In this document: positions 12,521 through 13,072 of the stretch, in pieces
Position numbering within the stretch: position 1 is the first letter of the stretch
Layout: each line of letters starts with the position of its first letter
NCBI GenBank assembly: GCA_013115145.1
Contig: JAAPAO010000033.1
Location: forward strand, 58,483-122,482
Direction of reading: 5' to 3'
DNA from: Perkinsus chesapeaki ATCC PRA-425
Lineage: Eukaryota > Protista > Perkinsozoa
DNA: 64,000 bases
Translations under genes and position numbers: made by a program
The notes under the pieces: generated by a model
The model's input: only the letters and a program-made list of their open reading frames with translations
Database searches by the model: none
What the model was told of the DNA's origin: nothing

Positions 12521-13072
12521 ATGGCAAGAATTAAGCAAACTGCTCGAAAAAGTACCGGTGGTAAGCAGCCCCGTAAACAGTTGGCATCAAAGGCAGCACG
12601 TAAATCATCACCATCGGCTACTACAATTCGTCGACCACATCGGTAAGTTATAACACCTGTTAAATAGCGGCATCTTCATATCAGTTTTCGACCTGGTACT
12701 GTTGCCCTTCGGGAAATTAAATGGTAGGTTACCTTGGGTTGTAATTGGTATATGTAGAGGGTGTTATTAGGTATCAACATAGTAGTGAGTTACTTATTAA
12801 AAAGTTGCCATTTCAAAGGCTTGTTCGAGAGATTGCTCAGGATTTCAAAGTGGGTTTGAAGTAATAATAAATATGATGATAGGTTAAATGGTTATTGATG
12901 TGATGCCTTTAGATTCCAAAAATCAGCTATTCTAGCTCTACAGGAGGCTGCTGAAGCTTATCTTGTTGGATTATTTGAGGATACTAACCTCTGTGCTATA
13001 CATGCTAAACGAGTAACAATTATGCCAAAAGATATGCAATTGGCAAGAAGGATAAGAGGAGAACGAACTTAG
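12521..13072 (+). CDS. Divergent histone H3 variant, 4 exons
   Basis: Spliced product [136 protein letters not shown]. Introns at about 12643-12684, 12724-12770 and 12861-12912. Confidence 0.95.

Follow-up and report, generated by a model that had tools for sequence, protein, structure and literature searches.

A divergent, intron-containing histone H3 gene of Perkinsus and its possible role as a replacement variant lacking T3, K36/K37 and K56

The 64-kb stretch of Perkinsus chesapeaki DNA analyzed here (the window) holds only one H3-like sequence, a gene on the plus strand at 12521-13072, which we call H3v. It consists of four exons and three introns of 42, 47 and 52 nt, all bounded by GT..AG. 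The spliced coding sequence of 411 nt encodes 136 amino acids and a stop, and each of the three introns, if kept, would give an in-frame stop. The gene stands alone between a gene for a leucine-rich repeat (LRR) protein and an arginase gene, with Saf4/Yju2 also among the neighbors. The spliced model was identical, letter for letter, to GenBank KAF4676525.1 (P0201, "hypothetical protein FOL47_005961", P. chesapeaki), whose locus on JAAPAO010000033.1 (GCA_013115145.1) was 100% identical to window 9521-16072 (6,552 nt compared). The exact protein was found on one contig per species. The features of the locus are as follows.

12422-12464, plus strand: candidate promoter or regulatory block, conserved and non-coding, containing ACGTG (40/43 identity between P. 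chesapeaki and P. marinus)
12513-12514, plus strand: trans-splice acceptor AG, the joining point of the spliced leader (RNA contigs of runs X1, X2 and X3 match the genome from 12513 onwards)
12515-12520, plus strand: 5′ untranslated region (UTR) of 6 nt left after trans-splicing (start of the contig fit, and sequence)
12521-12642, plus strand: exon 1, with Met, residues 1-39 and two bases of the R40 codon; tail residues I3, Q15, T33, T34, I35, R36 and R37 (junction 12642/12685 in RNA)
12643-12684, plus strand: intron 1, 42 nt, GT..AG (RNA; same position and phase in P. marinus)
12685-12723, plus strand: exon 2, with the final base of the R40 codon, residues 41-52 and two bases of the W53 codon; F41 and K52 (translation, RNA)
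12724-12770, plus strand: intron 2, 47 nt, GT..AG (translation, RNA)
12771-12860, plus strand: exon 3, with the final base of the W53 codon, residues 54-82 and two bases of the K83 codon; H56, K79, V80 and G81 (RNA; matches Pfam Histone alone)
12861-12912, plus strand: intron 3, 52 nt, GT..AG (translation, RNA)
12913-13072, plus strand: exon 4, with the final base of the K83 codon, residues 84-135 and the stop TAG; K86, S87-A-I-L90, the rest of helix alpha-2 and helix alpha-3 (RNA)
13073-13115, plus strand: 3′ UTR to the end of the RNA contigs, without a histone-type stem-loop (contigs end at 13109-13115)

We aligned RNA contigs of four runs to window 12380-13280. X1 to X3 were three 454 metatranscriptome runs of one study (P1), with contigs of 481-486 nt, and X5 was a 2015 run of a second study (P2), with shorter contigs; such contigs give neither expression level, strand nor transcript ends. 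All three junctions were present, with exactly 42, 47 and 52 nt skipped and zero differing letters. An earlier reading of the window from its letters (the sequence-only reading) had proposed an intact, intron-containing gene spliced in this way, and the contigs of all four runs agreed with it exactly. That reading had also named an alternative splicing that removes W53 and H56, and a lack of expression, as outcomes that would count against it. Both residues were kept by the junctions in RNA, including the one between exons 2 and 3 at which the W53 codon arises (TG/G), and spliced, trans-spliced RNA was present in two studies.

The three long contigs departed from the genome at 12513 and then read ...CCGTAGCCATTTTGGCTCA, a spliced leader of the dinoflagellate/Perkinsus type. 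The terminal AG of the leader coincided with 12513-12514, and the leader was joined 6 nt before the ATG. The leaders of P. marinus are ACCGTAGCCATCTTGGCTCAAG and a 21-nt form, and read ...CCATCTTGG... (PMC3101222). Further upstream, the block at 12422-12464, about 43 nt long and 57-99 nt before the start codon, showed its 40/43 identity against two P. marinus sequences (alignment A4), despite saturated synonymous sites in the coding sequence. In the loci L001, L003 and L004, its exact 34-nt core was confined to this position. It is a candidate promoter or regulatory element.

Run X5 also held a second version of exon 4 (window 12913-13029), which differed at 10/117 nt. The five differences that were listed were all at third codon positions, and this version is a divergent allele or a second copy in P. 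chesapeaki, kept under constraint. On the minus strand, one low-depth RNA contig of X1 (about 12347-12541) spanned the 5′ end of H3v and the upstream spacer, and carried reverse-complemented spliced-leader letters after 12541. It would represent a leader-tagged antisense transcript whose start lies within exon 1 at a good acceptor, CTTTTTCGAGCAG, and it could also be a PCR artefact.

The spliced product carries T3I, A15Q, G33T, G34T, K36R, K37R, R53W and K56H, which are all the substitutions that the sequence-only reading had listed. The lysines and the serine that it had described as retained (K4, K9, S10, K14, K18, K23, K27 and K79) could all be read in the P. chesapeaki translation, and T11 and S28 were kept as well. 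Compared with the canonical H3 of Perkinsus, described below, H3v has the further changes T29S, T32A, Y41F, R52K, T58S, D59E, R63K, V74I, T80V, D81G, R83K, S86K, V89I, M90L and S135T.

Despite these changes, the membership of H3v in histone H3 is clear. The Pfam family Histone (PF00125) matched residues 7-132 with 151.7 bits (cut-off 26.4) and the P. marinus orthologue with 151.8 bits, and single exon pieces already matched it. In a phmmer search against the PDB, residues 1-135 were aligned gap-free to human H3.1 (E = 1.5e-69). The tail (residues 1-40) differed from that of yeast H3 only by T3I, A15Q and changes within residues 29-37, and has K4 and the H3-type ARKS motifs of K9 and K27. Residues 91-133, which contain the H3-H4 and H3-H3′ interfaces (the region of C110, H113, L126 and I130), were invariant in alignment A6 except at position 124, where H3v has Met, as does canonical Perkinsus H3. 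The exon 4 piece was 90-96% identical to ordinary H3. An AlphaFold2 monomer model of low confidence (mean pLDDT 47.5) placed helices roughly at alpha-N and alpha-1 to alpha-3 of H3, and an ESM Atlas model (pLDDT 0.76) matched H3 clusters at a TM of 0.74.

The bulk H3 of Perkinsus is encoded by genes of another type. One identical 136-aa protein was encoded by 13 or more contigs from P. marinus and P. olseni. All of the 11 gene copies examined were uninterrupted, intronless open reading frames (ORFs) of 411 nt, and an H2A-type gene was called beside at least six of them. In each of the 11 (L005 and L006-L015), a 3′ stem-loop, CAAGGCGTT-NNNN-AACGCCATCT, sat 38-47 nt past the stop. Between copies, as many as 68 of 411 nt differed, without a single amino-acid change. 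In the supplementary alignment of Postberg et al., the H3 given for P. marinus matched this protein, which keeps T3, A15, G33, G34, K36, K37, Y41, R52, R53, K56, T80 and D81. Thus the possibility raised in the sequence-only reading, that the same substitutions are present in the bulk H3 of the organism, does not hold for P. marinus or P. olseni, the two species that supplied the canonical loci. In P. olseni the canonical gene lies at L005:4671-5081 (JABANP010000160.1), where H2A/H2B-type and linker-histone genes cluster with it.

Compared with this protein (EER03781.1 and others; the P. olseni gene above), H3v has the same length, 83% identity and identical residues 91-133. Among the residues it changes are T3, A15, G33, G34, K36, K37, Y41, R53, K56, T80 and D81. 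The canonical genes are multi-copy and intronless and carry the stem-loop, whereas H3v is single-copy, has three introns and lacks the stem-loop. The Perkinsus histone stem-loop motif was absent from the whole 64-kb window and from the 300 nt past the H3v stop in both species, and the 3′ UTR of H3v folded no better than shuffles (z = +1.13). The GC content at third codon positions (GC3) was 0.24 in H3v versus 0.52-0.67 in the canonical H3 genes.

Several observations were made on the canonical genes themselves. Stem-loops of histone mRNAs are already on record for P. marinus (review, PMC6723414). On L005 of P. olseni they were located at 5126-5144, 5841-5859, 6473-6491 and 7165-7183. The Histone3 model of Rfam gave the Perkinsus stem-loop only 19-23 bits, short of its gathering score (34), so standard annotation would miss it; the matches of this model in the P. 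olseni cluster were all sub-threshold. GenBank KAF4688178.1 (178 aa, P. olseni, L005 4001-5081) has a spurious N-terminus on canonical H3, the real ORF being 4671-5081. The neighboring P. olseni models at L005 5386-6415 and 6629-7661 seem to combine adjacent histone genes: one had two Histone matches and an H2A C-terminal domain, and the other had a linker-histone domain and a histone-fold match. In P. marinus, the canonical genes form two families (L006/L009/L015 and L007/L008/L010/L011/L014), 65-68 of 411 nt apart, with all differences synonymous. Their 3′ flanks are different, while the protein is identical and the stem-loop is present in both.

A maximum-likelihood tree was built from 49 H3 sequences, a sample from which dinoflagellate and apicomplexan variants were absent. 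The three H3v sequences formed a clade (support 100/99) on a branch of about 0.28 changes per site, compared with a median of 0.008 for the tips. Its nearest neighbor, across this long branch, was the canonical H3 of Perkinsus. S22, I35 and M124 are common to H3v and canonical Perkinsus H3, and few or none of the other 45 sequences have them. In these 45 other unique H3 sequences, T3, G33, G34, K36, K37, K56, T58 and R63 were invariant. The sequence relationships fit an origin of H3v by duplication within the Perkinsus lineage.

The orthologue in P. marinus is XP_002768229.1 ("histone 3, putative", 134 aa), and arginase likewise lies downstream at its locus. A Logan contig, L001, reached via the adjacent gene, was 98.9% identical to P. 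marinus ATCC 50983 and had the H3v orthologue directly downstream of that gene; the two orthologues differed by two residues. The H3v sample thus comprised three sequences from two species. The first three exons in P. marinus measure 122, 39 and 90 nt, with the intron phases seen in P. chesapeaki.

H3v of P. chesapeaki differed from that of P. marinus at 12 of 134 residues. The proportion of nonsynonymous differences (pN) was 0.054 and that of synonymous differences (pS) was 0.76, which is saturated, giving a pN/pS of about 0.07. Within P. marinus, 7.4% of intron positions and 1.2% of exon positions differed. H3v is under strong purifying selection, and the ratio near 1 that the sequence-only reading had named as the sign of a decaying copy was not found between these species. 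The variant residues common to both species are I3, T34, I35, R36, R37, F41, W53, S58, K63, V80, G81, K86 and L90. Position 56 is a non-lysine in both, His in P. chesapeaki and Arg in P. marinus. H3v varies between the two species at R8H, Q15M, residues 31-33, K52R, H56R, K79E and K83R, and constraint at some mark sites is thus relaxed in the H3v lineage itself.

These results led us to consider H3v reasonably probable as a Perkinsus-specific, single-copy, replacement-type (replication-independent) H3 variant that would be unmarkable at T3, K36/K37 and K56. The gene has the architecture of replacement-type histones: it is solitary, has three introns and no stem-loop, and is transcribed into a cis-spliced, leader-carrying mRNA. 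The canonical Perkinsus genes have the classical replication-coupled architecture. As residues 91-133 are unchanged except 124, the protein should pair with H4, form H3-H4 tetramers and enter nucleosomes. It would probably be routed via a separate chaperone pathway outside S phase, because residues 86-90 (KSAIL/KSAVL versus SSAVM) and Y41F lie at positions that distinguish replicative from replacement H3 of plants and animals. Chaperones specific to replacement histones read the patch (PMC9797984). In plants, H3.1 and H3.3 differ at 31, 41, 87 and 90, and HIRA reads 87 and 90 (PMC9797984).

On H3v nucleosomes, phosphorylation of T3 by haspin would be impossible. Set2-type methylation at K36/K37 would also be impossible, arginine keeping the charge and T33/T34 replacing the glycines. 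The same would hold for acetylation of K56, replaced by His in one species and Arg in the other. Y41F, R53W and K56H/R lie on the alpha-N helix, which holds the last turn of DNA, so H3v probably alters the wrapping of DNA ends. Where it enters chromatin, H3v would create, or dilute in, patches blind to three marks and readable at K4, K9, K14, K18, K23 and K27. KAT11 is presumably the Rtt109/p300-CBP family, the acetyltransferases of K56, in which case a writer exists for at least one of the lost marks. KAT11 acetyltransferases have been reported in P. marinus (PMC4751559).

The sequence-only reading had gone further and suggested a specialized variant that cannot carry elongation or mitotic marks. 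Its view of a specialized variant seems largely right. The haspin site is indeed lost; however, S10, T11 and S28 are kept, and so is K79 as a site associated with elongation (E79 in P. marinus). The loss of mitotic marks was therefore overstated.

Several points weigh against a replacement variant with blocked mark sites. K79E and R8H in P. marinus are changes at mark sites that are not conserved, and part of the pattern may reflect relaxed constraint rather than design. The residues typical of H3.3 are only partly present: S31 also occurs in canonical H3, and at 89-90 one species has IL and the other VL. Another divergent P. marinus H3 variant (PMC4751559) could be the true H3.3 equivalent. 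The canonical comparison was drawn from loci of P. marinus and P. olseni. As to the transcript, the 454 libraries were made by reverse transcription PCR, and the TTTT of the leader (TCTT in P. marinus) may be derived from the primer; a leader-like 5′ end must nevertheless have existed on the H3v mRNA, as it was required for amplification. No poly(A) tail was recorded on the H3v contigs, which simply end at 13109-13115. The AlphaFold monomer model was of low confidence, and the function of H3v is entirely inferred.

H3v might instead be a packaging variant of a particular stage, such as zoosporulation or the hypnospore, that alters nucleosome stability as testis and sperm H3 variants do, with the loss of mark sites being secondary. 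A solitary intron-containing gene without a stem-loop would suit this explanation. So would the clustering of changes in the alpha-N helix and loop L1 (Y41F, R53W, K56H/R, T80V, D81G and S86K), and the low GC3 hints that H3v is not bulk-expressed. However, H3v RNA was present in two unrelated studies, and X5 is probably a culture transcriptome, which is not suggestive of a rare stage. We regard a stage-specific role as unlikely, although it is compatible with much of the explanation we prefer. Slightly less likely still is that H3v is the ordinary H3.3 equivalent of Perkinsus, whose changed residues are tolerated drift in a histone of lower abundance and have no specific role. The replacement-type architecture and the unconserved changes at or next to mark sites (R8H, Q15M, 31-33, H56R and K79E) agree with such drift. 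Yet I3, T34, R36, R37, F41, W53 and a non-lysine at 56 are the same or equivalent in both species despite saturated synonymous sites, and T3, G34, K36, K37 and K56 did not vary in the 45 other H3 sequences. Replacement of lysine by arginine preserves the charge and removes the modifiable residue, which looks selected. Moreover, H3.3 proteins elsewhere keep K36 and K56.

A decaying or neutral H3 duplicate on its way to becoming a pseudogene could account for H3v evolving faster than canonical H3 (12/134 residues between species, versus none among the canonical copies). But the reading frame is unbroken in all three sequences from the two species, synteny is preserved and the introns keep their positions; conservation is six times higher in exons than in introns, pN/pS is about 0.07, and the mRNA is both spliced and trans-spliced. 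We rejected this explanation on expression and selection and consider it very improbable. Least probable of all, to a degree that it can practically be set aside, is a centromeric H3 (CenH3). H3v is a divergent single-copy H3 paralogue, and it gave weak, sub-threshold Pfam matches to the CENP-T and CENP-S folds, but canonical H3 gets the same matches. The tail is canonical in length and sequence, H3v aligns to H3 without gaps and is 83% identical to the canonical protein, loop 1 has no insertion, and Q68, F84 and T107 are kept; the CenH3 identity was rejected on these grounds. The replacement variant blind to three marks thus remains our preferred reading. A bolder form of it, in which H3v is the sole replication-independent non-centromeric H3 of Perkinsus and every nucleosome replaced outside S phase would be blind to haspin, to Set2 methylation of K36 and to acetylation of K56, seems doubtful to us, a little more so than the plain H3.3 equivalent.

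Generally, H3.3 and canonical H3 are only about 4-5 residues apart, and H3.3 retains all major modification sites. H3v does not show this near-identity: 23 of 136 positions differ, and T3, K36, K37 and K56 are replaced in both species. Its likeness to H3.3-type histones is one of architecture; these genes are likewise solitary and intron-containing, lie outside arrays and lack the stem-loop. In addition, H3v departs from its canonical counterpart at the 87-90 chaperone patch and at position 41, where plant H3.1 and H3.3 also differ (PMC9797984). The closest functional analogy is with Arabidopsis H3.15, which lacks K27, and the sperm H3.10, in which a lost or masked lysine makes the nucleosome immune to one mark and so resets or dilutes it (PMC9797984). 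The plant cases concern K27 and Polycomb and are tissue- or wound-induced, whereas H3v keeps the ARKS motif of K27 and lacks T3, K36/K37 and K56 instead.

P. marinus has been described as having "several deeply diverging H3 variants", and erosion of the histone code, including K36, was reported in some dinoflagellate H3s (Marinov and Lynch, PMC4751559). Compared with typical dinoflagellate variants, H3v is only moderately diverged, has no insertions or extensions and is much nearer to canonical H3. Engineered and oncogenic mutants (K36R, G34R/V/W and K56R) share with H3v the positions, the change of K to R and a bulky residue 34. They occur in the laboratory or in tumors within an otherwise normal H3, whereas the H3v combination is natural, fixed and found across species. 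Such mutants prevent methylation in cis by Set2-family enzymes and mimic K56 in its unacetylated state.

The H3v gene is already annotated in two species; what is new is an undescribed, lineage-specific H3 variant in which the natural losses of T3, K36/K37 and K56 are combined with unusual cleanness. We found no paper naming the accessions of H3v. Two histone surveys covering P. marinus do not discuss the protein, and the supplements of PMC4751559 do not contain it. A profile search built from the exon pieces of H3v returned two Perkinsus proteins among the top matches, one of them KAF4676525.1. Exon 1 alone (40 aa) retrieved only short fragments of ordinary H3, with at most 78% full-length identity and no orthologue, in a search whose length window excludes full-length H3. 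Exon 4, searched against representatives at 50% identity, returned mostly mis-modeled H3 proteins, because normal H3s collapse into one cluster. Among them was P0078 of P. olseni, within which the canonical Perkinsus H3 is contained.

With respect to the surroundings, the relatives found for the neighboring 337-aa ORF upstream of H3v were only of the Perkinsus type, and an exact look-up of that ORF gave no record. Window 1-22000 has a GC content of 36-40% and holds low-complexity ORFs of the LRR type. Many of its 2-kb bins show a GC skew of about +0.2 to +0.3, while the skew is near zero at 6-10 and 12-16 kb. Window 38000-64000 has a GC content of 41-48%.

The sequence-only reading had set H3v in a sister lineage to dinoflagellates, and the organism is indeed Perkinsus, the nucleosome-bearing sister of dinoflagellates, which largely abandoned histone packaging. 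The scope of the finding is limited by the earlier GenBank entries and by the mention of divergent P. marinus H3s in a survey. H3v would be a natural counterpart of hand-built chromatin mutants, with the core kept and K36R, K37R, K56H/R, T3I and a tryptophan in alpha-N fixed. It would allow a test of what is gained from chromatin that refuses marks of elongation, assembly and mitotic targeting. Transfection has reportedly been described for P. marinus, so tagging and chromatin immunoprecipitation (ChIP) should be feasible. If H3v were the sole replacement H3, histone turnover, such as that behind RNA polymerase II, would be naturally uncoupled from the elongation mark throughout the Perkinsus genome, and the sister lineage of dinoflagellates would have taken an early step towards their eroded histone code. 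More generally, H3v may show how the erosion of the histone code began in this lineage.

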